A program made the translations under genes and the position numbers. From the NCBI GenBank assembly GCA_965644295.1, contig CBFFRP010000020.1, positions 1 to 64,000 of the forward strand: a stretch of DNA of 64,000 bases. The letters run 5' to 3'. Positions 1-27,988 of the stretch are shown here, one piece after another; the stretch's first letter is position 1, and each line of letters begins with the position of its first letter. The stretch comes from Paraphysomonas bandaiensis (lineage: Eukaryota; Protista; Chrysophyceae). The notes under the pieces were generated by a model that ran no database searches, was not told the origin of the DNA, and saw nothing but the letters and a program-made list of their open reading frames with translations.

Positions 1-55
1 CACTTCCGTTCTTTTTGTGTGATATGAAATTCGCCTTTATCGTGTGTCCGTGGAC

Positions 56-3000
56 TCACCGGCGCTTTTGATCTGGGGGTCTCCCTTTGGGATGGGTCTC
101 CATTGGTTTTGGAGGGGGCTCAGCATTCTGAATTAGGGTCCTGAGTGCACCTAGTTCCAGATGTGTGGGTTGGGAGTGGTGGGGATTGTTGGGAGGAGGA
201 GTTGGGTTTGTAGTATGTGTTACTGTGCTCCTGTGGGGCCGCGGGTGTAGATAGAGTTGTCGAAGCCGTCGGCGTTGTGGAGGTCTGGGCAGTCCAGTGC
301 TCTGTCGGGTAGGACCTGTGAGGTGTGCACGTGTGTCTGGAGTCGGATACGCTGTGGGGGGTCTTCGTTGGACCCCTAGTAGTCGAAGGACTCTCGGACG
401 TTGTCTTGACTGACTGCGTTTCGGACGGGGTCTCGGGAGTAGCCTGGGCGGCCTTTTGGACATGGTGATATAGCGACAACCGCGATCCTGTAACATAAGC
501 TTCGCTGCAGTGTAAAGCGGTTGCAGGAGATTAATAACCACTGTTTCTAGGTTCCGTAGACTGTGAGCCGTCAGGTGGTTGTGTATGTCATCTCCGAAGA
601 CCGTTTCCAGTTGGGCTGCTGTGATGGTTCCAGTCCAGTATCTCTCGACCTGTGGGATGGAGGGATTCCAGGCTCTGCTGGAGAGTCTCCGTAGTGCAGA
701 TGTGATCCAGTTGGGTAAGGTCTGAGTTCTCTGTATTTCGTGTAGCACATTTTTATGCGATTGAAATGCAGTTTCCCTTATTTGGGTGATGGATTCATGT
801 GTGCAGTCGAGGCACATATGTTTTAGGGAATCTAGTCGAAACCCGCAGTCAGAGCATGCGGCTTTGGTCAGGTCAAGCCCCTGTTTGGTTTTGGCCCGGT
901 TCCTCCCTATGCAGAAAGATTTGTCCCATGTCAGTGCCGTGTTGAGAATTCTTTGGCGTAGATTTGAGCTGAGTTTGTCTTTGGATGCACTGCCATCCGC
1001 TTGAGCTAGTTTGCGCGGGAGGTGTACTCCGCTATTGGTCCAGTAGCCAGGCGCTCGATCAGGATTGTTTCCGTAGCGTTGATCTCTGGTTGAAGTGTAG
1101 TTCTCAAGTGTCCTTAGGTCGCAGAGATCTTGGAAATCAGTAAGGAGTGGGCTAGAGTAGTATGGCCGTCTTGTACTGTGCAAACGCCAGTGCCATAATC
1201 CAGCGGTTAGTAAGCGTTCAATGGCACTGTCAATCGCAATTGTACAGACAGTGTAGTTATTTTTTCCAAGGATGCGATCGACTTCATGCCAGTCTTCACC
1301 CGCGACTGCGTCCGCAATATAGATGCCCTTGTCCTCAAACGTCCACTCCGTTTCATCTGTGGTACGTCGTTCGGGATGGGACCTCACCCAGGTCACCTGT
1401 CGTTTGCAATCTCTACTGGCCGCGATGCTTTCGAGTAGTACCCCTTTTGCACGGTGACCGAGAGCTCTGCGTCTTGTGGAGAGTGCTTCCTCAGTACGGG
1501 TGCACACTGCCTGACAGTCTGTGTGGCTTCTTATGTGTTCGGGAATGCGTGTTGAGAGTATAAGCCCCATGGCTGTGCCTATGAGTTCATATGCGTATGA
1601 GTCCAAACCTGGCACATCACGAAAGGGTGTATCTAGTCGTAGTATTATGGTTGTACCATCTTCCCAGGCATTTTCTGGGGGTAAGTAGACGACCGCTGCA
1701 CCTCCTCGGTGTGTCCATCGTGTTCGCGGATTGACATGAGTGAGGCGACGCGTGGAGAGCGCACTGGCTGTGTATGATCCATCTGTGAAGATTGCCTTGA
1801 AAGTATCTGGTTGGACGCTATTAAGGCCGAGTTCTTGTTTTAGATTGGTCAGCATGTGTTCATCCTGTGGTTCGGGGGGCTCAGGTTGCTGAAGGGTAAG
1901 GCCCAATTCCGTTCCCCATTCCCTGAGGCTGAGAACATAGTGGTGGTATTGGGGCTGTGGCTCTGTTGTCTGAGTGAGTAGAAAATGTGCTGCTTGACCT
2001 GCTTCTCCCCCGAGGGTTATTGCGCGCTGTAGAGATCCCCATTTTTGCTCCTGCGCCGAGTCTGAGAAACGTTTCATACCTAATCCGTTGTGCTTGAGTG
2101 AGAGGTAGATCAGTTCCGTGGGGTATCCAGGGCCTAGACTGAGGGCCTTTCTGTAGAGGGTTGCGCAAGCAGCGTCAATTTCTCTGTACCAGTGTAGCGG
2201 CCATGAAGCTTTGGTGGCTCTATAGAGCAAAGTCGGTATGATTTGGGTCTCGATAACCATGACTTTACAGCCGGCTGAGGCCTGTTTAATCCCTAGGTGT
2301 GTGGTCACGACTTTCAGGTATTTTAGACACCAATCATGGGAGGCCTTGTCTGTGATTGTGAGAGGAAGGTCTGCTCCGAGGTAATGTATCGACTCTAGTG
2401 ATGTTTGGATAGGGACTGGGTGTGGACGCCACGACCAGTCGTAGAGAATGATGTAGCCAATGGGGTCGGAGGACTTGTTGGAATCTTGTAGGATCGGAAA
2501 CACTGTGCAAACTACTTTGGGGATAGAGAGTTCCATTCCCGAAAGTACGCAGAACGCAGATATTTGTTGGGCAATGAGTTGGGCAGCGTGTATGGATTTA
2601 GCTATTGTGTTAAGATCATCCGCGAAGGAGATCTTTATTTCGCCGGTAGTCGGAGTCGTGAGTTGAATAGTTGGTAACGTTGGACTCGTTGTTGACAGTT
2701 CAATGTCCAGCCACGTGAGAAGGATGTCGTAGAGTGCCACCCAGGCGCATGTGGATTCTGTGCCCCCTTGGGTGATACCCCTTTCGGCTTCGAAACCCAG
2801 ACTGAATAGTGCAATGAAGTGGCCGTCTGCGGACAGGAGGTCAAGGAGAGAACGTGGCTCTATGTTGTTTGCCATGAATGGTGTCCAGGGAAATGTTAGA
2901 CCGCCGGCATCTAAGTTGCCAAACCAGTCAACTACATCGTCCGGAACGCCCAGTCGTGCCCACGCGAGACGCATGAGGTTAGGCGCAATTGAGTCGAAGG

Positions 3001-4249
3001 CCTTCTTGAAGTCCCAGAGTGTACATATATGCTGGTCGCCTTTTCGTCTTGCTTCTTCTGCAGCCGCGAGTACCCTTAGTATCGCTGTGTCCGTCCCGTT
3101 CCTCCAGCGATAACCATGCTGGGACGGATGCAAAACTTTCTGTTCCTCCCATACGGTAAGAATTCTATGAGTGATTATCCTTGTTAATATTTTCCTACTG
3201 ACTTCAAGCAGACCAATCGGTCGGAGATTAGTGAGGGAGGATTCTCCTGGTTTCTTGAGAATGGGAGACATTACCCTGTCTCTCCACCAAATGGGCACAT
3301 GTTTATGTTTCCAGAGAGATCTGGTGAGGATGTAAGCCTCTCGCTGAACTACCGGTGGCCAGGATTTGACCATGTTGGAGGAGACCATTGAGGGTCCAGG
3401 CGCGCGGTTGAAGGAGAGAGAGTGAAGTGTGCAGTAGAATTCATCCTGGGTGATGTCTTTTGCAAGAGTAGATTTGAGTGTGGCTGCCATGGCCGGAGTG
3501 GTCTTGGTACAAAGGGCCCGTCGTAACCCCAGTTGCAGGGGAAGAGGGATTTTCGAGCGGGGGTGGAGTGGTTCCTGGCATGTCGCTGAGCCCGGATCAA
3601 GAAGGGATTTCCACCATGTAGGGTCATCCTGGAGCTGTTGTGCTACAGGGTCAAGTCCAGGAGGTTTGGCATGATGTTCACGGAAGTGCGCATTAATGCC
3701 TTCATGAATGTCTTGCGGTGTTGTGAGGATGTGTCCGTCAGTTGTTTTCACCGTGGTAAGTCGGAGTGGTGTTTTGACCTTGAGACCAATTTTCTGAAGA
3801 ATTGCTTGAAGTCTTTTCTGCTGTAGCAGTGCCTCCATCTGATTGGTGCGAGCCGTGAGTCTAGTCCGCATTTCTGTCCTGGCTCTTCCATGAAGAAGTC
3901 CTCTCAGTCGCAAGGCAATTCGGAGAAGGTTTTTCTTGGTGGCTTGCTTTTCGTTCCAACCCAGGATTACTCGTGGGTCCGCGTTGCGATGGCTGCACCA
4001 GAAGTTGATGTCTGATATGCCTTTGATGTGACCCTGAGAACTCCTGAGATAGGAGTCCCATCGGATGAACCATGCAGTGATGATTTCGTGGGTGGGGGTG
4101 GTTGCCGGGGGCCGCGCCATCCATGCCGTTTGTATCCGGCAGAATTGAACATCTTTTGGATAATCCGCAAAACCATGATCATTCCTTCCTGTATTACTCT
4201 CATTTCCGGGGAAAAGCCATTCTTGAACTTTGAGCGTTTGCGCTGACAA
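56..4249 (-). CDS. Retrotransposon polyprotein, C-terminal part: reverse transcriptase, RNase H, CCHC zinc finger, Pro/Arg-rich tail
   Basis: RT: RAPGPS, LRPIGLLEVSRKIL, QHGYR, DFKKAFDSI, GITQG, FADDL, HYLG (~2370-3410). RNase H: IFTDGS, YELIG, HTDCQ, WVRSH, ADAVA (~1295-1800). Zinc finger: CSDC-x8-HMCLDC (~800-860). Confidence 0.93.
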   Translation of the reverse strand: MSAQTLKVQEWLFPGNESNTGRNDHGFADYPKDVQFCRIQTAWMARPPATTPTHEIITAWFIRWDSYLRSSQGHIKGISDINFWCSHRNADPRVILGWNEKQATKKNLLRIALRLRGLLHGRARTEMRTRLTARTNQMEALLQQKRLQAILQKIGLKVKTPLRLTTVKTTDGHILTTPQDIHEGINAHFREHHAKPPGLDPVAQQLQDDPTWWKSLLDPGSATCQEPLHPRSKIPLPLQLGLRRALCTKTTPAMAATLKSTLAKDITQDEFYCTLHSLSFNRAPGPSMVSSNMVKSWPPVVQREAYILTRSLWKHKHVPIWWRDRVMSPILKKPGESSLTNLRPIGLLEVSRKILTRIITHRILTVWEEQKVLHPSQHGYRWRNGTDTAILRVLAAAEEARRKGDQHICTLWDFKKAFDSIAPNLMRLAWARLGVPDDVVDWFGNLDAGGLTFPWTPFMANNIEPRSLLDLLSADGHFIALFSLGFEAERGITQGGTESTCAWVALYDILLTWLDIELSTTSPTLPTIQLTTPTTGEIKISFADDLNTIAKSIHAAQLIAQQISAFCVLSGMELSIPKVVCTVFPILQDSNKSSDPIGYIILYDWSWRPHPVPIQTSLESIHYLGADLPLTITDKASHDWCLKYLKVVTTHLGIKQASAGCKVMVIETQIIPTLLYRATKASWPLHWYREIDAACATLYRKALSLGPGYPTELIYLSLKHNGLGMKRFSDSAQEQKWGSLQRAITLGGEAGQAAHFLLTQTTEPQPQYHHYVLSLREWGTELGLTLQQPEPPEPQDEHMLTNLKQELGLNSVQPDTFKAIFTDGSYTASALSTRRLTHVNPRTRWTHRGGAAVVYLPPENAWEDGTTIILRLDTPFRDVPGLDSYAYELIGTAMGLILSTRIPEHIRSHTDCQAVCTRTEEALSTRRRALGHRAKGVLLESIAASRDCKRQVTWVRSHPERRTTDETEWTFEDKGIYIADAVAGEDWHEVDRILGKNNYTVCTIAIDSAIERLLTAGLWHWRLHSTRRPYYSSPLLTDFQDLCDLRTLENYTSTRDQRYGNNPDRAPGYWTNSGVHLPRKLAQADGSASKDKLSSNLRQRILNTALTWDKSFCIGRNRAKTKQGLDLTKAACSDCGFRLDSLKHMCLDCTHESITQIRETAFQSHKNVLHEIQRTQTLPNWITSALRRLSSRAWNPSIPQVERYWTGTITAAQLETVFGDDIHNHLTAHSLRNLETVVINLLQPLYTAAKLMLQDRGCRYITMSKRPPRLLPRPRPKRSQSRQRPRVLRLLGVQRRPPTAYPTPDTRAHLTGPTRQSTGLPRPPQRRRLRQLYLHPRPHRSTVTHTTNPTPPPNNPHHSQPTHLELGALRTLIQNAEPPPKPMETHPKGRPPDQKRR

Positions 4250-4472
4250 CGTTCGTGTAGTCGTGTGCTATAAGTACATGCAGGACGCTTCGCTTCAAGC
4301 GAAGCCTGGAGGGTTATGTGATGGATGGCCGCTAGTCTGTTGGCTGCCACCTCAGGAGGGAGTATGGCAGACGATCCGTTGTCTAAATGTGGTAGTTGTG
4401 CATGAAGTTGGAGGAGTCTTGCGGTGTATGCCTGTACTTCCTTGGAGTCCTTCGGGTTTACATTGAGACGGG
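4100..4472 (-). CDS. Frameshifted linker between endonuclease and RT parts (within ORF 3967..4584)
   Basis: Removing one C in the C6 run at ~4470-4475 and adding one C in the C5 run at ~4107-4111 joins both large ORFs (which share a frame) through RIPRLNVNPKD...KFKNGFSPEMRVIQ...HGWRGPPAT. Confidence 0.65.
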
Positions 4473-7400
4473 GGGATTCGGAGGTGCGACTCAGGTGGTC
4501 GAGGGTCAAGATTGACTGGTACAGTGAAACCGACCCAGACCGGTCGATGATCGAAGGCTGCTGCGAGTAGTGAGGGGGAGTCAAGGCAGCCAGTGTCCGT
4601 AACAGACATGTTCGGAAGTAACGGCGTGTGTAGAATATGATCGATCCGCGATATTCCTTTGTCTAATCTGTGGAAGGTATGATATGTTTTCCTGGGTAGG
4701 AGAAGCTCATGGAGTGGTGCAGCCAGTTGGAGTTTGTCGGCAAGTGGTCGTATGTCTCTGCCTTTCGGATTTGTCTCCATGGAGCCATTGAAGTCGCCGG
4801 CGACAATGACAGTATGGTCCTTGGCTCTGGCTTTAGTGACCCATTTCGTAAGGATGTTGCATAGGAGCTTGTAGGGGTCAGCAGTACAGATACCACGGGA
4901 CGCTCTCCCTAGCTTGGTCAATTTGCTCCATAATGTGCAAGAGCCTGGCGTGGATGGCTTCGGGGGTAGATAGACGCTTATTAGTACTAGGGTGTGCGCC
5001 ACCGACGTTTTGAACTCTAGTCGGCTCACTAAACCAAGTCCCGTAAAGTCAGCCTTTGTGAAGGCGAGACGGCGCTTCCAGTATTCGCTGATTATGACTA
5101 CTGTACCCCCCATTAGTGGGTCTCTTGAAGTCAGTTTTGGCTGCTTGCTGAGGAAGAGGCATATTCTTGATCCCTGGATTGCATCTTCTATGATACGTGT
5201 GAAGAAGTTGGCCTGAGTTTCTGTTAGACGGACATCCTGTAATAGGAGCACGTCCAATTTTTGCCGCTTAAAGTGTCGGATGATAGCTTGGACTTTGCCT
5301 GTGTGAGATGCCGGATTGCCATTTGTGTTCCATGTGGAGAGTCGGAGTCCCATGGCTGCTCCCGAGGGAGCCTTGGGGATGCTGCTGGAGGTCTCTGTAG
5401 GAGTTCCACTCTTGTCTGCAAGGAGTCTGTCCCATACTGCTTTATTGGCACCGCCTATGTCGCTGTCGTACGCAGCCCTGGCTTGGATTAATATCTCAAG
5501 TGGCCAGCGTTGATCACACCAGTAATGATGCCCGTAGTTGATGAGAAGTTCTTCATCCTTAGCAATGGGACGTATTGTACGGACATAGAGGCGTTTATTT
5601 TTCGTGACAAACTTGACATTAGCCATGTTTGTGGCTAGGGGGTCATTAATATACCCAGCTTCGCATGTTACACATTGTCGGACTTGGTCAAAGCCATCTA
5701 TTGCGAAGGTACCAGTACTGTCTTGAACTATGTAATCAGAACGCCTTGCAGACTGACTCAGCTTTGTTAGTGGATAGCGTTTGCCTTTGTACTCAGCAAT
5801 GATGACGTCTGCTGGGAATGTGTTCTTCGCATAAAGGGATAGTCCTTTGGCAGTGTTATCGGCGTACGCAATGTAGAACTTTCTTGACCAGTCCTTGTCC
5901 CAGCTGGTGGTATCAAGTGCTGGAGTTGGTCTGATCGTTCGTGTGGTCGTGGATTGGTGTGAGTTGTGAAGGTTCGTTGGTTGGTCACTTTCATCGTAAT
6001 TTACGACCTTTTTGGCTTTCCGGGTTGGCTGGCATCGACTTGTCAACGCAGTTTGGGCGTGTTTCAACTGCATCTTCTTGTGCGATGGTAGTGCTCCAGG
6101 GGTTGAAGCCTGCAGAATCTGTCGATTTGTTCGTGCTAACTTGGTGCTGCTGGACGAGGTTGTTCTGGTGCTGGTCGTCTTTGATGTCCTATTGTTGTTC
6201 GTGATTGAGTCCGCGGGAAGTGTAGGTGGAGCGATGGGGTCAGACGTTGAGAGTATACTGGTGGCCAAGGTGTTTTCAAGAGATAGTAGGGCGTTGTCTA
6301 GGGCAGTAGAAAGACCGGCAGGGTCTAAGAGGAAGTAGTGAGCATCTTGTAGTATGACATGGTAGTAGTTATCACGAATAGCGTTCCTAAGTTCCTCCAC
6401 CTTCCATGCGATGTTATAAGCTACTTTGTCAGTAGGGATACCTACAATGCTGAGATAATTACCATTTTGCGCCCACGTCGTGCAGGGGTTGATAGTAGAG
6501 GCTAAAAGGTGGACCTCTCGCACTGAGAGCCAGTGAGTTATGTCGTCCTCCGTAGTGTATGTTGTTTTGGCAGGTATTAAAAGTGCGGCCTGTGCGTGAT
6601 CCAACTTATGTCGTAGTGGCTGAAGTGTGTGATGGGCCATGCACTCCCGTTGCATTGTGTCGAACGCTTGGGTGCCTAATGTATTTATAAAAGATGCTAG
6701 CGTGTGACGGTCCTTGCGTTGTTTGAGGTCTAATTTCAGACAGGAGCGAGTGTGTCGCCTGCTTGAAGCAAGAATGTGCAGATGATAGAGTGTGCTGTAT
6801 GCGCAGTATCCATCACTTGGGATATGTTGTTGTGTGCGAAGGGCTGAGGGTCTGAGGGTGAGGCGATAGACTCTGCTCATGTCGCACATATGGAGCCTGA
6901 GTTGTCGACGGTCCGTGGGGTTCATCTGCCGTAGTTGACGTCGAGCTCTCGGTGACAAGGAGACTGCAATTACTTCCCTCTGTTCCTGTTGCTCTCTTTG
7001 CTCATGTAGCATAGATGGTACAGTTGACGGTTCAGAAGTCCAGATGATGTTGGTGCTCTGTCTGGAGGTCTGGTGTTGTAGAAAACAGGATAGCCGCTCC
7101 TGAGTTCGTGTTAGAGCGTGCATGATGGAGGTGGGGATATTTGTTGCATTTAGTATGTGAAACCCATGCTGGCTGCGTATGATGTCATGGGTTACCACAG
7201 TGTTGGTAGAAGCGTGCACTGTTAGTGCCTGTCTGGAGAATGGTGATAGCTGTGCCCAACCAGGCGCCAGGTGCGGTTGAACAGCGTCCCATAGTCTGTA
7301 TGGTATGGAGAGAAGATCGAGTAGCAGTTGGAAATCCTCCGTGTCTAGATGTAGTCCTGTGTGTGGATTCGAGGATTCATATTGCATAAGTGTCTTACGG

Positions 7401-9145
7401 AGAGTGACAGTGGCTGTTGAGGGAATACCCTTTGTCAGGCAAAGGGTCCGCACATGCCTAGATACAACATGAGTGGAGTCTGCCCAGGGTTTGTTGCCAT
7501 TCGCGAGATGCTGGGCAACTAGTAGGGCGCTGTGCGTGGTGTCCAATTTGTGCTCTGGTAGCGTGAATGATATCATGAGATCATAGTTGTCCGTCCTGGA
7601 AGCCTTGGCTATGAATCCTTCCCATATGTCTAAACAGGCAGGGGATAGCATGTGTGCGTATATTTCTTTTAAAAGGTTTCCCTGTGGGGAGGCAGCAATG
7701 GTTTGGGTTTCATCATATCTAACCCAGTTGTTCAGCAGATCGGAGTGAAAGGGCGTGTGACCCCGGCCCTCTGTGTAGTGTAGGGGGTATGTGGCAATAT
7801 CCTTGGGCAGTACATCCGGCCTGAGGTCAGGAGTGGTAGTGGAGAGTGAGGATGGGCCGTCTGGGGCTAATGCTGGAGTTCCCATGGTGTTCAGTTGAGT
7901 AAGGTTGGTGGTAGGTGGCTTCCGTTTGACTGGGAAATAGTCAAATAACGTTGCATACGGTGTGGTGGCATCCTTAGTGGGTAAGGGTAATGTGTGGGTG
8001 GATTTGCTGGGTCCGTCACCGCTGTTATCGGAGGAGAATTCCTTCCCCTGAAGGGCGTGGGAGGGATGGTTGATGGACCTGGCACGGTGGACTCCTTGCA
8101 TTCCCTTGGAATGACATTGCAACACATTTTGGAGACGCATGATGACGAGGTCAGGAATTCTCTCGAGTAGCGCGTGTAGTTCCAACTCCACCGGGTATTT
8201 GGTGTCCAGGAAGAAGTGATCGTTGGAGCAAAACACATCATAAGATGGAAGGAATTGAGTTTGTGGAAGGAAGGAGGAATAGTGGGTGGACCAGTACGCC
8301 CAGTAAGGGAGAGGCGATAGTTTGTCTGGGGGTTTTCTAGGAGGAGGTAGAGTGTACTGTGTGTGTGTATGACACTGCAGTGGTGTTATGAGTGTGTTGG
8401 ACAGAGAGAGAGAGCTGGTGATGTGTCCAACAGTACAGGTAGACAGGTACATGGACATGGTGATGTGTCCAACAGTACAGGTAGACAGGTACATGGACAT
8501 GGTGATGTGTCCAACAGTACAGGTAGACAGGTACATGGACATGGTGATGTGTCCAACAGCAGTAGAGGTATACACGGAATGGTATACATCCTGTAGGACA
8601 CAGTAGTACAGTAGTCGAGTATACCGTATGCGGAATACAGTGTCTATCCAATGAGATGGATGGGCTGTGGGGGTGATAGGTGAACAGGGTGAGGGGGTAG
8701 CCTGCTGGGTGGATGGACCACAGACAAACCATGTTGGGTTGGGTTGAGTGGGCGGCAGAAGGCAGCCCTGTTGCACAGTTGAGAGGGATCGAGAGTATTC
8801 AGTGATTGCATAGGGGGTCCATGGGGGTCGTTTTCGTGAGCCTGCTCGCACGAGCCATGTTCTGAGAGGTTGTAGCCGTAGAAAGCGATGGGTGAGACGA
8901 AGTTGTCTGCTGAGGGGATAGCACGTAGGTGCGGTCAGCGCTGCATTGGTGCAGGCACGTGGTTTAACTGAAGTAGTTGAGTAGGGTGAAGGTTGCAAGG
9001 CCAGGCAGGGGGGCTTGGAGCGTGTACAACATGGTGTGACAGGTAATTTGTCGGAAGCGTGGTGGTCAACAAAATGCAGCAGTAAGGGAGTGTAAAAGGC
9101 CCTGGGCACACTGATGTGACTCAGCCACAGTCTCAATAGAGACAT
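4352..9145 (-). CDS. Retrotransposon polyprotein, N-terminal part: low-complexity region, OTU-like protease, SET domain, apurinic-like endonuclease (true start Met uncertain)
   Basis: OTU-like HIPSDGYCAYS (~6795-6825) and HVILQDAHYFL (~6330-6362). SET: KGLSLYAK..IIAEYKG..FAIDG..AGYINDP..NVKFV..IAKDEELLINYG..YW (~5515-5850). APE: STWNTNG, DVLLLQD, SVYLP, AGDFNG, SRIDHIL, DHRPV (~4535-5350). Confidence 0.85.
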   Translation of the reverse strand: MSLLRLWLSHISVPRAFYTPLLLHFVDHHASDKLPVTPCCTRSKPPCLALQPSPYSTTSVKPRACTNAALTAPTCYPLSRQLRLTHRFLRLQPLRTWLVRAGSRKRPPWTPYAITEYSRSLSTVQQGCLLPPTQPNPTWFVCGPSTQQATPSPCSPITPTAHPSHWIDTVFRIRYTRLLYYCVLQDVYHSVYTSTAVGHITMSMYLSTCTVGHITMSMYLSTCTVGHITMSMYLSTCTVGHITSSLSLSNTLITPLQCHTHTQYTLPPPRKPPDKLSPLPYWAYWSTHYSSFLPQTQFLPSYDVFCSNDHFFLDTKYPVELELHALLERIPDLVIMRLQNVLQCHSKGMQGVHRARSINHPSHALQGKEFSSDNSGDGPSKSTHTLPLPTKDATTPYATLFDYFPVKRKPPTTNLTQLNTMGTPALAPDGPSSLSTTTPDLRPDVLPKDIATYPLHYTEGRGHTPFHSDLLNNWVRYDETQTIAASPQGNLLKEIYAHMLSPACLDIWEGFIAKASRTDNYDLMISFTLPEHKLDTTHSALLVAQHLANGNKPWADSTHVVSRHVRTLCLTKGIPSTATVTLRKTLMQYESSNPHTGLHLDTEDFQLLLDLLSIPYRLWDAVQPHLAPGWAQLSPFSRQALTVHASTNTVVTHDIIRSQHGFHILNATNIPTSIMHALTRTQERLSCFLQHQTSRQSTNIIWTSEPSTVPSMLHEQREQQEQREVIAVSLSPRARRQLRQMNPTDRRQLRLHMCDMSRVYRLTLRPSALRTQQHIPSDGYCAYSTLYHLHILASSRRHTRSCLKLDLKQRKDRHTLASFINTLGTQAFDTMQRECMAHHTLQPLRHKLDHAQAALLIPAKTTYTTEDDITHWLSVREVHLLASTINPCTTWAQNGNYLSIVGIPTDKVAYNIAWKVEELRNAIRDNYYHVILQDAHYFLLDPAGLSTALDNALLSLENTLATSILSTSDPIAPPTLPADSITNNNRTSKTTSTRTTSSSSTKLARTNRQILQASTPGALPSHKKMQLKHAQTALTSRCQPTRKAKKVVNYDESDQPTNLHNSHQSTTTRTIRPTPALDTTSWDKDWSRKFYIAYADNTAKGLSLYAKNTFPADVIIAEYKGKRYPLTKLSQSARRSDYIVQDSTGTFAIDGFDQVRQCVTCEAGYINDPLATNMANVKFVTKNKRLYVRTIRPIAKDEELLINYGHHYWCDQRWPLEILIQARAAYDSDIGGANKAVWDRLLADKSGTPTETSSSIPKAPSGAAMGLRLSTWNTNGNPASHTGKVQAIIRHFKRQKLDVLLLQDVRLTETQANFFTRIIEDAIQGSRICLFLSKQPKLTSRDPLMGGTVVIISEYWKRRLAFTKADFTGLGLVSRLEFKTSVAHTLVLISVYLPPKPSTPGSCTLWSKLTKLGRASRGICTADPYKLLCNILTKWVTKARAKDHTVIVAGDFNGSMETNPKGRDIRPLADKLQLAAPLHELLLPRKTYHTFHRLDKGISRIDHILHTPLLPNMSVTDTGCLDSPSLLAAAFDHRPVWVGFTVPVNLDPRPPESHLRIPPSQCKPEGLQGSTGIHRKTPPTSCTTTTFRQRIVCHTPS
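8416..8559. repeat. 42-bp tandem repeat, ~3.4 copies, near the 5' end of the LINE
   Basis: tggtgatgtgtccaacagtacaggtagacaggtacatggaca starts at 8416, 8458 and 8500, with a partial copy at 8542. Confidence 0.95.
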
Positions 9146-9539
9146 TGGGCTTGGAGCTGGTTAATAGAGTGAAACTTTATGTTGGACTGTATTTGCCATC
9201 GTAGGGCAGAGAATTATACGTTCTTGGCTACATACATTCAGTAGATCATGCCATAGCCAAAGACCCCACTACGTGAATGATGCCTGGCTGAAGTACATAA
9301 ATATTTAATACACAATGCTAATACCTAAAACACAATATGAAAATCCACAACTTACAGAAATGTTTTCGGGAGAATGACACATGCATATGACAGAATCGAA
9401 TAGGCTTTCACTATTAATTTATTACATTGAACGAACATAAAGTCCGCATGCTGCTGCAATAGCGAACTAGCGTGAGCTTTGTTCAAAATCAGAGTAATTA
9501 CTAGACATCTGAAATTTGACGATGAACTTTAGCTCACAG

Positions 9540-10268
9540 TTAACGAACTTTTGTACTATCTTTTATATATAACTTCACTTTCTCATAACTCTTGGATACT
9601 CTAGGCGCAACATAAGGTAATAAAGCTAAGTGGGCAGGCACAAGAAGGACGTTGATTAACCCGGCAGCTGCTAAGGCAGACCCGGTGTTCTTCACACTCT
9701 CAGAGATACCCAAGTAGTCTAGCGCTGGATCTATATCAACTCCATAAGACACAAGCGTGGCAACGCCAGCTATGGTAGAGAAAACAGAGATCTTAGATGA
9801 TATATAGAAAGCAAATCCGTATTTGTCCACTGGCCCGCGTACGAAATTGATTATTTTCTCAGCGTTGCTGCTAGGGTCTTGAACTGCATCACCAAATATA
9901 AAAGAAGCCTTAATATGTTGAAGATTCGGGAATGCCTTCGATAACCCAGCAGCTATAGCTACATTAGCTGGTTGTCGCATTTTACCTGTCATCTTACTGG
10001 TCATATAGCCAATAGCCAGCTCAGGTCCCATTGGGACAGAAAAAAAACTCAATATAAAAGCTAATGAATACATCGTAGAGAGTCTGATGGCTATATATGT
10101 AGGCAATGCAATTGAACTGTTATTAGTAAGGGTGTCATTGAAATGTTTAATCCATTTTGGTAGGTTTGTTTCATTCTGAGTTGGTGTGCATGTAGTACTG
10201 CAGTATCTCAATAGGATATTGACTTGTTTGGTAATAGGAATAGGTACGAGAACCCGCCGAAGTAGCAT
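9540..10268 (-). CDS. Uncharacterised 242-aa membrane protein, possible mitochondrial presequence
   Basis: Single uninterrupted ORF with several hydrophobic segments; Arg-rich, acid-free N-terminus (MLLRRVLVPIP). Confidence 0.65.
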   Translation of the reverse strand: MLLRRVLVPIPITKQVNILLRYCSTTCTPTQNETNLPKWIKHFNDTLTNNSSIALPTYIAIRLSTMYSLAFILSFFSVPMGPELAIGYMTSKMTGKMRQPANVAIAAGLSKAFPNLQHIKASFIFGDAVQDPSSNAEKIINFVRGPVDKYGFAFYISSKISVFSTIAGVATLVSYGVDIDPALDYLGISESVKNTGSALAAAGLINVLLVPAHLALLPYVAPRVSKSYEKVKLYIKDSTKVR

Positions 10269-10938
10269 GGTAATCGCTGATAATAATTATTGAGTGATTG
10301 TGTAGATATGGATGCAAGACAGTGTGTTGAGTGTATATATAGAGAGATGCAGGCTATAAATAGAGAAGCATACATGGACCATACATGTACACATACCATG
10401 GACTACAGTGTATTCCTTATTCTCTTGATCTGGACATACCGTACAGCTGTATTGTATACTTTGGTTATACAGAATGTATACTTGTGTATACAGTAGGAGT
10501 ATATGAACGGTTTCTTGATTTCAATCCATATAAAACACATAAAAAACAAATACAAACCTGAAAATGTTTAATTTCTAAGTATTTATACTAGAAATTAAGG
10601 TTATTTTCCATGTTTTGGTGAACCTTAAAAAACTTGTACTTACACTATAATTATTTGAAATATATGACCAGTATACTGCTGTACATACATGTACATACAT
10701 ACATCACGTAGTGTAGATATGAGGATATGGTATAATTGCTATCTATTTAAATATATGCCAAGTATGTGTGTGTATTACTATACAGCTCATAGCAATCCAT
10801 ATATATCATTCACATACATGAAGTGTGATATGATTTAACTTCATCTTCATAGATAATTTTCAATTAATTCTTTGTAAAATTCTCTAAAAAAAAACACACA
10901 CACAAACAACACATACATACATATCTATATATTAAATT

Positions 10939-13900
10939 ATGTCTAAAAAATTCAATAAAAGAAAACCAACAATTTTAACAAAGAATGAAATTGAAAAAAA
11001 AGAAAATGAATTAAAATTATCTTTACATGAAGCGGAAACTAAACAATTAAGTGATTATATAAAAACACGTACAAAACTAATTGATCATGAAATTCATCAA
11101 ACACGTCAAAAATTAGATATACATTTTGATTTATCTGATAAAAATTATAAATCAATGAAATCTAGTGATATGGAAGTATATGGATCTAAACCTCCTGTGA
11201 AATCTAATGATTTAATGGAGATATCAGACAAGAGACAATCTACCAAGTTATCTCAACAAGATTCATATAATCGTGGAGAAAGAGAAGTATTAGAGTTATT
11301 ACGTCGTTTACAAACATGTAAGTTGTATATGATGTAGTTTATTGTATGCTGTGTGCTGGTATATGTGTATATATAGTCTGTCGTATGCCATGTGCTGTGC
11401 TGGTATATGTGTGTATATAGTCTGTCGTATGCCATGTGCTGTGCTGGTATATGTGTGTATACTGTTGTCTATCATATGATGTTATGTACCATTGCCTCTT
11501 ATATGATGTAGTTTGTCGTATGTCATGTGCTGGTATATGTGTATATATAGTCTGTCGTATGCCATGTGCTGTGCTGGTATATGTGTATATACTGTTGTCT
11601 ATCATATGATGTTATGTACCATTGCCTCTTATATGATGTAGTTTGTCGTATGTCATGTGCTGGTATATGTGTATATATAGTCTGTCGTATGCCATGTGCT
11701 GTGCTGGTATATGTGTATATATAGTCTGTTATATGGTATATACTGTTGTCTATCATATGCTGTTACATTTACCATTGCTCTTATATGATGTAGTTTGTCG
11801 TATGCTCTGTGCTGTTACATGTATATATATCATATGCTGTTATATACTGTTGTCTATCATAAGCTGTTATATGTCATTGCCTCTTATATGTCATAGCCTG
11901 TTACGTGTAATGCGGCGTTGTATATTACATGATGTAGTCTATCGTATGCTGTTATATGTTATTACCTATAATATGACATAGTCTATTAGATGTTATATGT
12001 TGTTATCTATCTTATGCTGTCTGTTATATAATATATGATGTTATCACTTATATGCTGTTGTATATCATATGATACAGTATCCTGTTATATGCTTTTTCTT
12101 GTTATGTGAAATAGTCTTTTCGGTGATATGATATGATGTTATCTATTGTATGATGATGTTATGTGGCGTTTGATATTGTCGATTAGATGCTAGATGTTGT
12201 TGTTGGCTATATGATACCATGTGCTCGTTTCTGTTATATGGTCCCACATGCCTTTCTGTGGTATGGTGTTGCCCGTTATATGTTGTTGTCTATTATAGGG
12301 CTATTGATCTCGATATAAAATGCTACTGGATTACGATTGTGTTTATTTTTCTGTCTATATTAGGTATGGAAGACTCTGAAATGAATCCTGGACAGATAAC
12401 GCAGTGTTTCCTGCCTTCTCAAAGCAAAGCAAGTGTGAAGGTCACTCTATAGGCTCTGTTTTTATAACTTTTTGATATTGAAGTATCCATTGCGTGAAAT
12501 TACAAACAGTAGACTTATGTTTTAAACTCATCAGTGTCCTACGCTGCAGGGTTGTATACCTTTGGTGGAAGTGGTGGATGTATTTGAAGTTGACCTGGTT
12601 CAGCCGCTCTCACAACATGACCAATCGGTATGGATTGATCAATCACCACATCGTGTTGTTGTATCATATTTGTGTCTGTTATGCTAATGGTGCGTGCCTC
12701 ATCGGAAACGACGGAATGCATTTTTTTTCGTCGTGTATGCTTTGATGACGATATTTTGTGCATGTGCTTACATGTATTGCTCAGCTACTGTCAAAGTTTT
12801 ATGGTACTCATGAAGGAGATATAGATGTGAAAGCCCTCCTCACAGACCTGAGTAAGTTTTGCTTTTTCTAACACGTATTATATCGCTTGGCTCTGAATTA
12901 GATTAGTACGCCTATCGTCTCATATATGCCTATGCAAGTTTAATCTTGAGAACTAGGAAGAATTACTATGCTGTCTAATATGTACATAGGCTTCTGGGAG
13001 CCACCAAAAGGCGCACAAGACACTGAAAATGGGAAACGTATCAATGCTGTCCATACACAAAACAACAGGCACAGTAGTTTAGTTGACGATGACGACGACC
13101 TTGACGCTGACCTACCGACCTATCTGAAGAACAAGCGGGAAAGGGACAGTTACGAAAGATTACGTGAAACACATGAAGAGGAGTCAAACGACTACCGGGT
13201 AACGATTCGTGTGTGAAGAATGTTGCATTGTAGATATGTGTTAGGGTACATTTGTCCTATAATGCTTTTCCTGTTGGAATATCTGCGAATGTTGAATTTA
13301 TCCTCTTTCGTATCGATTTACAGAAAACCCCACCACAAAAGTCAAGGACCAAAGACTTTGTTCCTGAGCCTGTGATTCACAGGGATGCAGCTGGTCATGC
13401 GGCCCTTAACGTACGTTTCCACTCTACCAGCTGTGTACACGCGATTTTTAGTTTGCTACAGTATATACTGACTGTGTAAATATTAATGTGTTACATTTTG
13501 GGTTTATTTGGTATATTCAGCGCAGTGCACTTGCCGACATACACGCGCTGGTGACAGAGAGTCTTCCACCTGACAGGTATGTGGTTGTTTATGTTACTAG
13601 ATGCATGGATTGTGGTAATTCATAGTGTGAATAACTTCTATGTTTTTCTGACGTATGGATTGTTTCAAACTCCGCATTAATTTATTTATAGTTTCAAAGT
13701 GGACCCGGACTACCAGGAGTCGACACGGAGGAAAACCACATACGACGAAGTTGATGAAGAAGATGACGAGAAACTTCTCCAAACCCTTCGTAAAGAAATG
13801 GAAAAAGAAAAAAATCAGATGAACTCAAGGTATAGGACGAAACATGAAGACATCATAGTCCTTTAATAAATATTTTCCTACAGGAAAGAAACGAGTGATA

Positions 13901-16900
13901 GTGATGTGCACTCGGACAAGGTATCTGATAAATTTATGGACCAGCACGGAGATGGAGTTCTCCCTTCGCCACGACCTAAGGACACTGAAGGCTCTAAGAC
14001 TATTGAACAAATCGCAGCTGAGAATGTAGCGACTGCTTTGGCGATAGAAAATGCTAAACTAAAGGCTGAATTGAGTGCATTTGATAGTGATTTTTTTGAA
14101 GAACTTGAAGATTTAAAGTTCAAATATACTCAGCTACAGGCGAGTTAGTGATTGCTTGAGTGCTAATTTAGTGGGTTTTTCTAATCTTTGGTGTCCACTG
14201 TGTATATGTGCAAATGCACCTAATATGACTAATATTATTGCTATTAGGGCATTGTTGGTGACCAAGCAGTCCCAAAATCCCCACCCCGGAAGAAAGAGGC
14301 CAATTCTGATGACGCTCGAGACGAAGTGGCTGGCTCGATAGCCAAGTATGTGAATGGATGTGTGGTATATATACAATCTACTCATGTGCTTGTAGGCTTG
14401 GGTGGTCGACGAGGAACTCTCTGAAGGCCTTAAATAGGTAGGAGTCGTAAGCACAGATGTCGTGAATGTAATATATATATAGGGCAGGACTCACTAACCC
14501 ACCGATCAGAACTCTCCCAGGTCACATGCACATTTTTTATTGAACAGCCATATTAATATATATGGATGTACAGGGCAATATAACATGACAGATTCAATTC
14601 ATGCTCCGAGTAGTCCTCTAAGAAATCGCCATTCACCGACACGTAGAAGCTACGACAGTCGCACTCGAAACTTTCAACACAGTTCAACGGCGCCAACGTC
14701 TCATTTGCTTTCCTCTTTTGATTTCAATAGCTCCAGCGGAAATAATTTCTCTGGGCTTTGTGAGAGGCGTCTAGTTTTTGAATTACAAAATCACACGAAT
14801 CCCGCTAAAGCTACAAGCACTTTGATTCATCGAATATCTAATATTGCGCATTCAGAAAAAGCCAAGGGGTATATAACTGCATCTCAACTACATGACGCAA
14901 TGCGTGGAGTTGGTCTCTCAATGAGTCGAGAAGAAGTGGACCTATTGGCTAGCGGATTTGCCAGTAATGGGGAAGGGGGTGTAGATGCGAAGGAGTTATG
15001 TCGGGCGATACAAACGATGATGTACAACGCGGTGGACACTGAAAGTGCTCCGGACGGGAACGTTGACAGGGTAGTGAAGAGTATTGTTCGCTCCATAGCA
15101 ACTGACCTTTTGGCACACAAGAATTATTCTCAGCTTCTTCGTCTTCGTGATGACCTGCATTCCATCGGTGGCAGAAGCACGAGCCGAGTTATGGAAAAGG
15201 TCGAAATGCAGCTCAATGATACCGTTTCGAAACCATTTTTATATATGGATGATAATGATAACGGCATTCTCACTGCGAAGGGCTTCGTTAAGATCCTGCG
15301 GCATTTTAGTCATGGTCTTCCAGATGACGAATTGCACGTGCTTATTGAATATTGGTTAGTTGGAAATGAAGATGAAAATGAAAATGCTCTTCATAATAGG
15401 ACTCCTAAGCATTGCGTGTATTACAAGCCGTTTATATCTCTTTTGGTCGAGGAATTGCTTGATATTCTCTTAGATGAGAAGATTGTGATTAAAAACTATG
15501 GAGACGGCACCGAGTACGATAACGAGGTCGCGTATGACATGGGAGGTACCATGCCTTGGCTATTGCATGAGTTTGAATTTGTTGATACATTATTGTGTCA
15601 ATTGGAGGACCTGGATATGTCTGCCAGAAGAAAAAGGCTTATACAACTGCAATCCGTACTTTCATCACACGCGAGTATGGATGGTGACGAAGGAGGAAGT
15701 GTTGACGGATATGCTGTGCTGAAAGCTCTTTTGAGTGTGGGTTTTGAAGTGCCACGAAATCTGCGTGTTCAGTTCCTCCAGGGGGTTGAACAATTATCTG
15801 GGGTATTCAATTTTGTGGATCTGTGTAAGCTCCTTATGAGTGCCTGCCTGGACTGGTCGAGTGAGGAACGAATGGTTGTTGGGAAAGTTCTGCATGCTAT
15901 GGGGATCACCACTGACCAGCGACGACTTTGGCTTGGGAGATTAAAAAAGGATCTGTACACAACTGCGGTAGAGCAACGTGCTGTCAAGGGGGCTCAAAGT
16001 GTGCGTAGTAAGCGGACACAGAGGACCCTTCGAGATGGTCTTCTACTTACCGCAGAAGATGATCTTCTAGAAGCCGAACGTGATGTGGTACGTGGAATTA
16101 GCGAGGAAAACCCTGGGCTTCCTGCGTCTGCATTTCTGCATACTCTGCGTGAATGTGGGGTAAATTTGACTGTCGATGAGGAAGCTACCCTTTTGGACTG
16201 TCTTGATTTTGAAGAAAAATCTAGAAGCATAGTCGAAAGTGGTATGCAGCAACCACTACTTTCTCGATCTGAAAAAATTAGTGCTAGTGCACCACTTATA
16301 CGCTATAAGTCATTTGTAGCGCTGTGCGAAAGACATGTGGGGAAATGGTACCATGCTGCACCCGAAATTAACGAACAACTAAAGGCTGCACTAATGAATC
16401 TCAAAGAGTCCGATGCTGCCGACTCAATATCCGAACTGCAGTCATTACTACTGGCATTTGATGAAGGAGATGCCCATTCAATAGGATATAGACCATTCCT
16501 GGTTACTTGCAGGCGGTCGAGGCTTCTGGGGAAACTTGATTCGTCTGTTATTGAGGAGTTAGCCAAGATATTGCTGGAAGAGGGGTCGGGAAAAATTGAG
16601 TACTTTCCATTTCTTTTACATTTGCGCTCGCTACATCACCAAGTACGAAAACTGAAAGCATTGAGCCGTACTATTTTGGAGGGTACGAAAGCGGAATCTT
16701 ATGATATGCTTAACCAGCTTTTAAGAAATGCATCTGATAGAGAGGATAGCACTTTGAGGCCATTGCGACATTTTGTGATCGAGCAGTCGTTACGGGCATC
16801 TCGGCATCAATATATGGGCGACAGACAAGTGGAGAGCGAGAATAATTCGTTTGAGTTATCACAACGTGAAGCCAGTGAACTGCTTCGTGAGTTTAATGTC

Positions 16901-26484: not shown

Positions 26485-27988
26485 ATGTCGATTACATTGA
26501 GTGCTTGTATTGATTCAAACGGTGAACTGGATCCAATGTTATACGTGCAATATATGGAGAGCAGGAGAAAACGACGCAAGGAAGGAATTCTACAAATGAT
26601 CTTCGAAGAAGAGAATCAACCATCACCTGGGAACCAAAACAAAAGCGAAAGAGAGGAAAGAGAGGATATTATGACGACGATGAAGGCAAGTGGGTTGATT
26701 ATGACCCACGCAAATCCTCTTGGTACGTACAGTATGTGTTGAGAGATCAAAGGAGCAAAAAAACAATTGCGCAAGTTTAGGAGAAGATTTAGGCTTCCAT
26801 ACGCTTCGTTTCAAGAATTCCTTTTAGTTTGGCAAGAACGGAAAAGTGGTTCAAAAGTTATGTGAAAGAAGACTGCAGTGGAAGGCCTGGTTCACCACTC
26901 GAATTATTGTTGTTGGGGAGCCTACGATATATGGGTCGTGGGTGGACTTTTGATGATATTGAGGAAGCCACTTATATAAGTGAAGAGGTCCATCGTGTAT
27001 TTTTCCATGAATTTATAAATGTCGGATCAACAGTTATATTTGAGAAGTGGGTGTCAGTACCGAAGACTCCAGCAGATATTCATGATTGCATGCATGAATA
27101 TGCAGAGGCCGGAATGAACGGAGCTATCGCATCGACCGATGGAGTTCATATCATTCATGAAAAGATAGCTGCGAAGTTAAAGAATAGTCATTTGAGTCAT
27201 AAAGCTCAGCAGACAACAAGAGTGTTTAATATGTCTGTAAACCATCGGCGAAGAATTCTTGCAACATCACATGGCAGTTGGAATGATAAAAGTGTTGTGA
27301 AATTTGATAAATTTATATGCGATATTCGTGCAGGTAGGCTATATGAGGATGTAGAGTACGAGCTGTATGATGACCATGGTATCCCACATCGATTCAGAGG
27401 TGCATGGGTCCTATCAGACAATGGATACTTGGACTGGTCATGCACAGTGCCTCCAACAAAGGATACAGGTCTATTCAAAGATATACGATGGTCAAAGTGG
27501 CTTGAATCTATGCGTAAAGATGTAGAGTGCACGTTTGTTATTTTGAAGGGTAGGTGGCGCATATTAAAGACAGGTATCCGTCTGAAGCATCCTCATTGTT
27601 GTGATAAGATTTGGAAAACATGTTGTGCATTTCACAACTTCCTTCTAGAAGTGGATGGTGGCGAGAAGGGGTTCCAAGCCGTTATGCTGGTGAATTGGGT
27701 TGGCATGATACTGAAGACAACGCACGCTGCAACGGAAATCGTCAGTATGATTGCTCTGGCGTGGGATTCGGTGATGATGACTGTGACGATACCACTGATG
27801 TTCAGTTTAGCACTCAAACTGCTCAACATGCAATTCGTCATATTCGTACATCATATTCTTTGGACAAGTTCCGTGGGTTACTCATCAGCCATTTTGAGTA
27901 TAGATGGCAGCGTCGAGATATTAAATGGCCTTCAAGAAATGGAAAAGGTGTACCATATGGTTGGGATCATGGTATGATTGTTTTGTAA
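26485..27988 (+). pseudogene. PIF/Harbinger (HARBI1-like, DDE_Tnp_4 type) transposase, frameshifted
   Basis: FRRRFRLP, LRYMGRGWTFDDI, GAIASTDGVHI, GSWND, LSDNGY, RKDVECTFVILKGRWRILK, CCAFHNFL; frameshifts near 26630, 26760, 26825 and 27660. Confidence 0.9.

Follow-up and report, generated by a model that had tools for sequence, protein, structure and literature searches.

We analyzed a 64,000-nucleotide stretch of Paraphysomonas bandaiensis DNA (assembly GCA_965644295.1, contig CBFFRP010000020.1, positions 1 to 64,000 of the forward strand; hereafter the window) and find at its start, on the minus strand from position 9216 to 1, a near-complete LINE retrotransposon whose coding sequence carries a SET domain and two OTU-like modules ahead of its endonuclease and reverse transcriptase. 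One minus-strand open frame (9145 to 4352, 1,597 codons) holds the OTU-like modules, SET and the APE endonuclease, while the reverse transcriptase (RT) lies in the next minus-strand frame (4249 to 56), followed by an RNase H signature and a CCHC finger. The features of the element are as follows:

9146-9216, minus strand: 5' end and short 5' UTR of the element.
7829-9145, minus strand: start codon (9145-9143) and poorly conserved N-terminal region (aa 1-439).
8416-8559: 42-nt tandem repeat, 3.4 copies, coding a 14-aa repeat whose copy number differs between element copies.
6929-7828, minus strand: OTU-like module 1 (aa 440-739), without a Cys at the aligned position in this subfamily.
6266-6928, minus strand: OTU-like module 2 (aa 740-960), with invariant Cys781 (codon 6803-6805) and His936 (codon 6338-6340).
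5459-5902, minus strand: SET domain with a conserved C-terminal extension (Pfam core 5531-5845).
4622-5335, minus strand: APE-type endonuclease (Exo_endo_phos).
4469-4470: first frame break, a G run two bases shorter than in a sibling copy and in all public contigs over the site.
4106-4107: second frame break, a G run one base shorter than in the sibling copy and in all public contigs over the site, which together with the first returns the downstream frame to register.
2375-3256, minus strand: reverse transcriptase.
1265-1807, minus strand: RNase H domain.
800-856, minus strand: C-terminal C-x2-C-x8-H-x4-C zinc knuckle, read from the translation.
1-58, minus strand: stop codon (56-58) and the first 55 nt of the 3' UTR, cut off by the contig start.

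The observation made in a preliminary description of the locus, based on sequence alone, is confirmed: the motifs it listed, HIPSDGYCAYS with the Cys, WLSVREVHLLA, QDAHYF with the His, and YINDP and EELLINYG..YW of SET, all lie in one open frame in the order given, ahead of APE. Several of its particulars nonetheless require correction, as the element extends far beyond the 4352-7000 interval assigned to it, the two short G-run deletions split APE from RT in this copy, a second, more degenerate OTU-like module lies upstream, and Pfam does not recognize an OTU domain.

The boundaries and integrity of the element were established by comparison with its other copies. Similarity among at least 40 genomic copies stops at window positions 9213-9218, and the same boundary shows as loose ends in public contigs. 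At the opposite end, other copies run about 181 nt further than the window copy and end in CACTAC(TA) with no poly(A) tail. A sibling copy, C440, is 99.86% identical to the window copy, has one tandem repeat unit fewer, encodes a single uninterrupted frame of 3,021 codons and is flanked by a 13-bp target-site duplication, TAGTAATTCATAA, with two ends unlike each other; the window copy itself cannot show such a duplication, because the contig start cuts its 3' end. The sibling was used only as a natural reference for coordinates, without construction of a consensus or mended frame. The genome gave at least 92 matches to the OTU-like plus SET region, and first-look candidates numbered 2,408 for the 3' end against 145 for the 5' end. 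Many copies lie at contig ends with their 3' end outward, but telomere-like targeting was rejected because the contigs break at different internal positions, so that these are assembly breaks in the more repeated 3' half. Contigs of poly(A) metatranscriptomes cover the element unevenly, unlike the flat DNA run, suggesting probable transcription, although RNA libraries can contain DNA. Splicing was considered for joints at 7433 and 8001 in the RNA-library contigs and rejected, as they lack GT..AG and the same joints stand in genomic DNA at 6 and 11 places.

SET, APE and RT are each supported by Pfam above their cut-offs, and were found in the same order in four diverged subfamilies at 40-60% identity. 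The endonuclease (aa 1271-1508) scores 38.5 bits against a cut-off of 24.5, although a search of it against the PDB gave nothing significant, and the RT (RVT_1) scores 56.1 bits, with human LINE-1 ORF2p as the nearest solved chain (E 3e-8). RNase H, located after RT, has no Pfam hit even at E<=10 and rests on a profile search of the PDB, in which all 21 hits are RNase H but with E-values of only 0.017-0.54, and on an invariant pattern (D14, E79, D102, H149 and D171) in 9 sequences. Pfam searches of the N-terminal region and of the C-terminal 297 residues at the same threshold gave no hit, and no PD-(D/E)xK motif was seen by reading the translation after the CCHC, which is a weak test for the second, restriction-like endonuclease of the Dualen/RandI group.

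The SET domain (aa 1101-1205) scores 36.7 bits against a cut-off of 22.4, and the family profile matches KMT2D in the PDB at E 3e-8, followed by KMT2C, SET1, SETD7 and EZH2 at up to 1e-3. Its motifs are invariant in 8 subfamily sequences, and a feature search of the ESM Atlas scored 0.96, with small stand-alone SET proteins of fungi and viruses as the nearest clusters. Asn1167 of the SAM pocket and Tyr1204 at the catalytic Tyr position are invariant and align to the canonical positions, while Asp1168 replaces the usual His of the N-H motif in every copy (AGYINDPL). No CxCx4C post-SET follows the domain, where a conserved W/E/I/L/Q/A/R helix is found instead; as vSET and SETD7 also lack a canonical post-SET, this does not exclude SET membership.

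In contrast, no sequence method recognizes an OTU in module 2. Pfam is silent at E<=10, a phmmer search of the PDB found only a spurious repeat-lectin hit and a pseudo-deubiquitinase at E 0.45, and a profile search of 1.84 billion proteins returned two hits, both fragments of the same family from metagenomes. The assignment rests instead on a predicted structure (AF2, pLDDT 75, pTM 0.75), obtained from a shallow 10-sequence alignment, whose best full-length matches in three fold libraries are nearly all OTU proteases. The top 11 VIA matches are all OTUs (Z 6.1-7.3, 132-152 residues aligned), and the Foldseek PDB and BFVD lists are dominated by OTUs, with a best BFVD E-value of 6e-4. These scores are middling, as VIA Z remains below 8 and Foldseek PDB E-values are at least 0.04, and an ESM Atlas shape search was weak (TM at most 0.44), as was recognition in the Atlas feature search. 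In the model, Cys781 follows a D/N-G-x motif and starts a helix (42-54), whereas His936 starts a strand (197-201), and both residues are conserved in every sequence that covers them. The residue three before the Cys is Asp or Asn, and that two after the His is Phe or Tyr rather than the acidic residue found in many OTUs.

Module 1 is kept in all subfamilies at 23-46% identity, and the subfamily represented by C32 retains G-F-C-S at the position where the Cys is missing here. Its AF2 model (pLDDT 58, VIA Z at most 4.6) is too weak to call a fold on its own, although every long alignment is to an OTU. RT relatives from another organism, whose best match in this genome is only 32-34%, carry SET together with two IPxxG(L/F)C...SHF modules that are homologous to module 2 and module 1 (hhalign probabilities of 89% and 84%, the latter at E 7.5e-6). 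A SET-like stretch seen by eye in one distant relative (P0029) was not supported (hhalign 4.6%), and a metagenome scan with the SET profile found nothing. A word search combining SET and APE gave one hit, a contig in a 'Nitrospiraceae' MAG that is 98-99% identical to the C426/C32 subfamily and therefore derives from this organism rather than from a relative.

Diverged subfamilies, at about 40-65% identity, retain both modules and SET. At unsaturated dS, dN/dS is 0.06-0.18 for module 2, 0.08-0.24 for SET and 0.21-0.32 for module 1. Against the C143 subfamily, dN is 0.25 for module 2, 0.24 for SET and 0.19 for APE and RT, as opposed to 0.62 in the linker and 0.55 in the N-terminal region, the least conserved across subfamilies. 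The preliminary description had named the absence of these domains from other copies as grounds for abandoning its reading, and the copies show the opposite. An assembly chimera, or a single host-gene capture in this one copy, for which nothing speaks beyond the unusual architecture, is effectively excluded, since dozens of copies at 95-100% identity on different contigs show the fusion, as do subfamilies at 60% and about 41% identity, and independent public assemblies hold the same sequence.

These data support, with good though not full confidence, a model where window 1-9216 is a recently inserted, nearly full-length copy of a LINE of about 9.4 kb. We take as established by the analysis that the family's single ORF of about 3,020 codons, as seen in the sibling copy, encodes in order a variable N-terminus, two tandem OTU-like modules whose fold is a prediction, a SET domain, APE, RT, RNase H and a CCHC knuckle; that the element inserts by target-primed reverse transcription, as evidenced by the target-site duplication, the excess of 3' over 5' ends and the absence of a poly(A) tail; and that SET and module 2, which evolve about as slowly as APE and RT under purifying selection, therefore serve the element and are not passengers. 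What these domains do is inferred: SET would methylate a lysine on a chromatin or RNP protein, its nearest solved relatives being H3K4 methyltransferases of the KMT2/SET1 type, and module 2 would act as a cysteine isopeptidase or protease, either removing ubiquitin-like modifiers or cutting the polyprotein, with more favourable chromatin or better protein stability for the element's own copies as the likely benefit. The interpretation offered in the preliminary description is partly supported, in that the LINE architecture, the SET fusion just ahead of APE and a predicted OTU-type fold hold, while both its proposal of a chromatin eraser/writer pair and its alternative of polyprotein processing remain inference.

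Among other readings, the one that survives best, though doubtful, is that module 2 is a polyprotein-processing protease akin to the OTU/papain-like proteases of arteri-, tymo- and kita-like virus replicases, which would cut the 3,000-residue product into working pieces and not act on host ubiquitin, with SET still a methyltransferase. The product is indeed one very large polyprotein, BFVD matches include OTU-like regions of RNA-virus replicase polyproteins, and an (L/V)-G-G motif between RT and RNase H is conserved across subfamilies and appears in several relatives from the other organism. However, conserved G-G dipeptides were otherwise found only inside the APE, RT and RNase H domains and not at the other domain boundaries, the (L/V)GG motif may simply be structural, most LINEs work as unprocessed ORF2 proteins, and the best solved-structure matches of module 2 are deubiquitinating OTUs. 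It is unlikely, but compatible with the missing profile link to any protease family and with Z-scores that can reflect a common arrangement, that module 2 is not an OTU but a lineage-specific alpha/beta domain whose Cys and His are conserved for another reason; against this, independent libraries all place OTUs on top for near-full-length alignments, no other family appears among PDB representative matches longer than 100 residues until well below them, and the Cys-helix and His-strand arrangement is the papain/OTU layout. Somewhat less likely still, the OTU-like modules, and perhaps SET, could be non-catalytic scaffolds docking the RNP on ubiquitin, histone tails or host factors, as suggested by the purifying selection on the Cys-less module 1, by N-D and the absent post-SET in SET, and by the weak pseudo-deubiquitinase hit of module 2. 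The invariance of the module 2 Cys and His across subfamilies at about 40% identity, their recurrence in the relatives from the other organism, and the invariant SET Tyr and SAM-pocket Asn argue against such a role.

A broader and more tentative possibility, which we consider less likely than not, is that a deep clade of protist LINEs, present in this marine ochrophyte and in at least one other uncultured eukaryote, carries its own chromatin toolkit, comprising a SET lysine methyltransferase and OTU-type deubiquitinase modules, used at its own copies or insertion sites to set permissive chromatin or escape ubiquitin-dependent restriction. This would be a histone-level counterpart of the retrotransposons carrying DNMT and DAM, and a histone-type lysine methyltransferase and ubiquitin-type protease fused into a LINE polyprotein, and kept under purifying selection across lineages whose RTs are only about 35-40% identical, would extend the arms race over DNA-methylation enzymes and readers to histone and ubiquitin marks. 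As the family is young, multi-copy and probably transcribed, and belongs to an organism represented in a culture-based transcriptome collection (MMETSP), the idea would be directly testable by biochemistry on the isolated domains and chromatin profiling of young insertions.

We found no paper describing this domain combination, although its components have precedents. The best structural matches of module 2 are viral OTU deubiquitinases (nairovirus vOTU, e.g. 6dx3, 6dx2 and 3phu) and otubains, with Z 6.3-7.3, 132-152 residues aligned and rmsd 3.2-4.1, but with sequence identity of only 8-16% and with a helical insert of about 55 residues (model 61-116) that is longer than in vOTUs. The SET domain aligns with minimal enzymes such as chlorella virus vSET (1n3j) and with KMT2/SET1 domains over the GxG-like, N-x and EELxxxYG..YW motifs and is, similarly, a short SET without a pre-SET, differing in its N-D and in the family-specific, conserved Trp-rich helix in place of a Cys-rich post-SET. 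NeSL/Utopia LINEs, with an Ulp1-like cysteine protease (PMC4640811), and Dualen/RandI elements are non-LTR retrotransposons with an N-terminal clan-CA-type cysteine protease of a ubiquitin-like-modifier family. These are RLE-bearing or dual-endonuclease elements with a different protease family and no SET, whereas APE is the only endonuclease detected here. Retrotransposons that captured epigenetic enzymes, namely SymbioLINE-DNMT and DNMT retrotransposons (PMC5890265), MBD-Copia (PMC6673714) and DAM retrotransposons (bioRxiv 10.64898/2026.05.21.726589), likewise hold a conserved chromatin- or DNA-modifying domain within their own coding sequence, argued to adapt the element to host silencing; those domains act on or read DNA methylation, and term searches of the DAM preprint and of an accessory-domain review (PMC6338049) found no mention of a SET-type protein lysine methyltransferase or an OTU module. 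HarbingerS and Plavaka (cited in PMC12730594; bioRxiv 10.1101/2025.02.11.637652) carry their own SET lysine-methyltransferase domain, as an accessory gene of cut-and-paste DNA transposons, while here SET is fused in frame between protease-like modules and the endonuclease of a retrotransposon. Finally, Helentrons and the Phytophthora proto-Helentron (PMC4067079), rolling-circle DNA transposons with Rep/helicase and no RT, have an APE-type endonuclease and carry OTU-like cysteine protease genes, and the oomycete proto-Helentron also has a SET-domain gene, with OTU and SET as separate accessory ORFs, which gives, in domain content and with no homology of their OTU or SET to those described here implied, the same trio of APE, OTU and SET in a stramenopile mobile element.

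The first 9.2 kb of the window are sharply set apart in composition, with about 50% G+C against 28-42% in the flanking host DNA (window 1-9216 compared with 9500-13000) and a strong positive GC skew on the plus strand, and hold two long minus-strand open frames, in which Pfam places SET, endonuclease and reverse transcriptase (RT) domains. The features discussed here are as follows.

9145 to 4352, minus strand: first open frame, 1,597 codons
aa 440-739 of the first frame: module 1, OTU-like
aa 740-960 of the first frame: module 2, with a predicted OTU-type fold
aa 1101-1205 of the first frame: SET (Pfam, 36.7 bits, cut-off 22.4)
aa 1271-1508 of the first frame: APE endonuclease, Exo_endo_phos (Pfam, 38.5 bits, cut-off 24.5)
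8416-8559: 42-nt coding tandem repeat, 3.4 units
about 4470 and about 4107: two shortened G runs
4249 to 56, minus strand: second open frame, 1,397 codons, with RVT_1 (Pfam, 56.1 bits)
about 2290-2310, minus strand: conserved (L/V)-G-G motif between RT and RNase H
26829-27977, plus strand: open frame with transposase domains
14540-19219 and 56264-60113, plus strand: host-side open frames

The preliminary description had reported OTU-like, SET and APE motifs in one open frame, with RT, RNase H and a CCHC finger following, and this observation is confirmed, all of its motifs being present where it placed them, with the qualification that the element lies on the minus strand and extends well beyond 4352-7000. 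Elsewhere in the window, the open frame at 26829-27977 carries DDE_Tnp_4/Plant_tran transposase domains and is thus a PIF/Harbinger-type DNA transposon, in which no SET was seen, although HarbingerS elements elsewhere are reported to carry SET genes. The host-side open frames comprise a 1,559-aa frame with EF-hand pairs and two adjacent C2-domain frames, one with a weak FerI match (ferlin-like), while a seryl-tRNA synthetase there is split by introns.

A copy of the element on another contig of the genome (C440) is 99.86% identical over 8.5 kb and features a single open frame of 3,021 codons. The window copy differs from it by a 1-nt and a 2-nt shortening of two G runs, at about 4107 and about 4470, which together shift and then restore the frame. 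Every public contig that covers these two places has the longer runs, as seen in a DNA run and in two poly(A) metatranscriptome runs, and the breaks are therefore either private to this copy or homopolymer errors of the assembly. The 42-nt tandem repeat likewise differs in copy number between near-identical copies, with 3.4 units in the window and one fewer in the C440 copy.

Similarity among copies stops at window 9213-9218 at the 5' end and, at the 3' end, about 236 nt after the stop codon, at ...CACTAC(TA) and with no poly(A) tail; in the window itself the 3' UTR is cut off after 55 nt by the contig start. The C440 copy is flanked by a 13-bp duplication, TAGTAATTCATAA. The 62.5-Mb genome gave at least 92 matches to the region spanning the OTU-like module and SET, about 25 of which are full-length matches at 97-100% identity, and first-look candidates were far more numerous for the 3' end (2,408) than for the 5' end (145). 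These are the marks of a young LINE that inserts by target-primed reverse transcription with frequent 5' truncation. Two internally deleted derivatives of the element also exist, with window joints 163|7433 and about 152|8001 (plus strand), each keeping the 5' 1.2 or 1.8 kb joined to the last 0.33 kb. Each has an identical joint at 6 and 11 genomic places (in the genome assembly, G000, at C52:75077, C78:1184, C117:17354, C32:53915, C35:260720 and others), such that they look like non-autonomous copies amplified in trans, and they account for many of the matches to the 5' end.

As a single sequence, the SET domain aligns to KMT2D/KMT2C, chlorella virus vSET and PRDM1, whereas as a family profile it hits KMT2D (E 3e-8), KMT2C, SET1, SETD7 and EZH2, and ESM Atlas features put it among small stand-alone SET proteins (score 0.96). 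In eight subfamily sequences at 43-63% identity, the motifs K-G-x-x-L-Y-A, A-G-Y-I-N-D-P-L and E-E-x-L-x-x-Y-G-x-x-Y-W are invariant, as is a Trp-rich helix that follows. The Asn and the Tyr sit at the canonical SAM-pocket and catalytic positions, but the usual His is Asp in every copy and there is no Cys-rich post-SET. It is a real SET domain, for which methyltransferase activity and a substrate can only be inferred.

In contrast, no sequence method recognizes module 2: Pfam is silent at E<=10, and a profile search of 1.84 billion proteins found only two fragments, both from metagenome contigs 99% identical to this family. An AlphaFold2 model built from a 10-sequence alignment (pLDDT 75, pTM 0.75) was compared with several fold libraries. 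In an all-against-all (VIA) search of 48,161 PDB representatives, the top 11 matches are all OTU proteases (nairovirus vOTUs, OTUB1, a Simkania OTU, FAM105A), with Z 6.1-7.3, 132-152 aligned residues and rmsd 3.2-4.5. Foldseek against the PDB returned almost only OTUs among the first 50 matches, albeit at E 0.04-0.4, and Foldseek against viral models returned OTU-labelled proteins of giant viruses, nairoviruses and botybirnaviruses, with a best E of 6e-4. In the ESM Atlas, 16 of the 30 nearest feature clusters fall in the set of families that includes a giant-virus cluster 19% of whose members carry Pfam OTU, and an otubain cluster is second in the shape search, both weak. In the model the I-P-(S/A)-(D/N)-G-Y-C motif starts a helix and the A-H-(Y/F) motif starts a strand, and the Cys and His are conserved in every sequence that covers them. 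We consider an OTU-type fold likely, whereas a working cysteine isopeptidase or protease, inferred from these features alone, is about as likely as not. An (L/V)-G-G motif between RT and RNase H, at about aa 2371 of the C440 polyprotein, is conserved across subfamilies (QRAITLGG) and present in several foreign relatives; it resembles the cleavage sites of ubiquitin-type proteases but may be only structural.

The stretch immediately upstream, module 1, is also kept in all subfamilies, at 23-46% identity. Its model is poor (pLDDT 58) and VIA Z is at most 4.6, yet every long alignment (111-129 residues) is again to an OTU. Direct hhalign of module 1 to module 2 is weak (30%), and the link between them comes instead through the foreign relatives described below. 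In the window's subfamily the position that aligns to the Cys holds no Cys, whereas the C32 subfamily, named after another contig of the genome, has G-F-C-S there. Module 1 is best read as a duplicated OTU-like module that has become a pseudo-enzyme in this lineage.

The substitution rates of the different regions are as follows.

Table. Selection across the element. dN/dS, given for three regions, uses pairs of sublineages with unsaturated dS of 0.07-0.57; dN is from the comparison with the diverged C143 subfamily, in which dS is saturated.
Module 2: dN/dS 0.06-0.18; dN 0.25
SET: dN/dS 0.08-0.24; dN 0.24
Module 1: dN/dS 0.21-0.32; dN 0.44
APE: dN 0.19
RT: dN 0.19
Linker (module 2 to SET): dN 0.62
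N-terminal region: dN 0.55

The accessory modules are constrained like the core enzymes.

To look beyond this genome, we searched with the RT region and found about 50 relatives at 22-42% identity on metagenome contigs. Four of these (P0011, P0013, P0017 and P0028) match the SET profile at E 2e-11 to 4e-18, with SET preceding APE and RT, and P0013 and P0028 also carry two tandem modules with IPxxG(L/F)C ... SHF(F/Y) motifs. These modules match module 2 at 89% hhalign probability (E 2e-6) and module 1 at 84% (E 7.5e-6), and as the best match of P0028 in this genome is only 32-34% identical, it comes from another organism. In a quick, midpoint-rooted RT tree, all rows with a SET lie on one side of a branch with 100% SH-aLRT support, and on the other side are four distant rows that have at least 1,000 residues ahead of RT but no SET. 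The layout of two modules plus SET is therefore ancestral to a deep LINE lineage, not a local accident. Another distant RT relative (P0047, an 18-kb ENA contig, 22% identity) carries PCIF1_WW and C5 DNA methylase domains next to RT and resembles the published DNMT-carrying LINEs of dinoflagellates. On the other hand, a 7.3-kb contig filed in a marine 'Nitrospiraceae bacterium' MAG (NCBI GCA_002726235.1, contig PBSN01000010.1) encodes SET, APE and RT but is 98-99% identical in protein to the C426/C32 subfamily of this eukaryote's LINE, and is thus a eukaryotic contaminant in a bacterial bin.

Downstream of RT, a 9-sequence profile hits only RNase H chains in the PDB (21 hits, E 0.017-0.54), with D, E, D, H and D invariant, and a C-x2-C-x8-H-x4-C zinc knuckle follows. 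The tail after the knuckle gave no Pfam hit and no restriction-like endonuclease motif was seen in it on inspection, so that, on this weak test, the element has no second endonuclease and is not Dualen-like. The nearest solved RT is that of human L1 ORF2p.

The genome's cytosolic HSP90 is 100% identical to an MMETSP transcript and has Ectocarpus (86%) and Ochromonas (85%) as its nearest named relatives, indicating that the host is a marine ochrophyte stramenopile, which is compatible with, but does not prove, a chrysophyte assignment. Fourteen DNA runs and six RNA-library runs hold the element. In poly(A) metatranscriptome contigs the 5' 1.3 kb is 20-40 times deeper than the rest, whereas a DNA run is flat across the element, which argues for real transcription, at least of the 5' part. 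The internally deleted derivatives probably explain the much deeper RNA-library coverage of this region.

Overall, these data establish a real, selected and unusual LINE architecture in which the SET domain is firm and the OTU fold, resting on a predicted model, is probable, while the function of both, including any catalytic activity and substrate, is inferred only. The interpretation offered in the preliminary description is partly supported: the LINE architecture with SET and a predicted OTU-type fold holds, whereas a chromatin eraser/writer pair and, alternatively, polyprotein processing by the OTU are inference only. We found no paper describing SET or OTU in a LINE, although a catalogue entry in Repbase Reports, which lay outside the literature search, cannot be excluded. 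The parts themselves have precedents: OTU and SET accessory genes are found in Helentrons and the proto-Helentron (PMC4067079), SET genes in HarbingerS and Plavaka DNA transposons, and an Ulp1-like protease in NeSL/Utopia LINEs. The idea likewise has precedents in the DNMT, MBD and DAM domains carried by retrotransposons.
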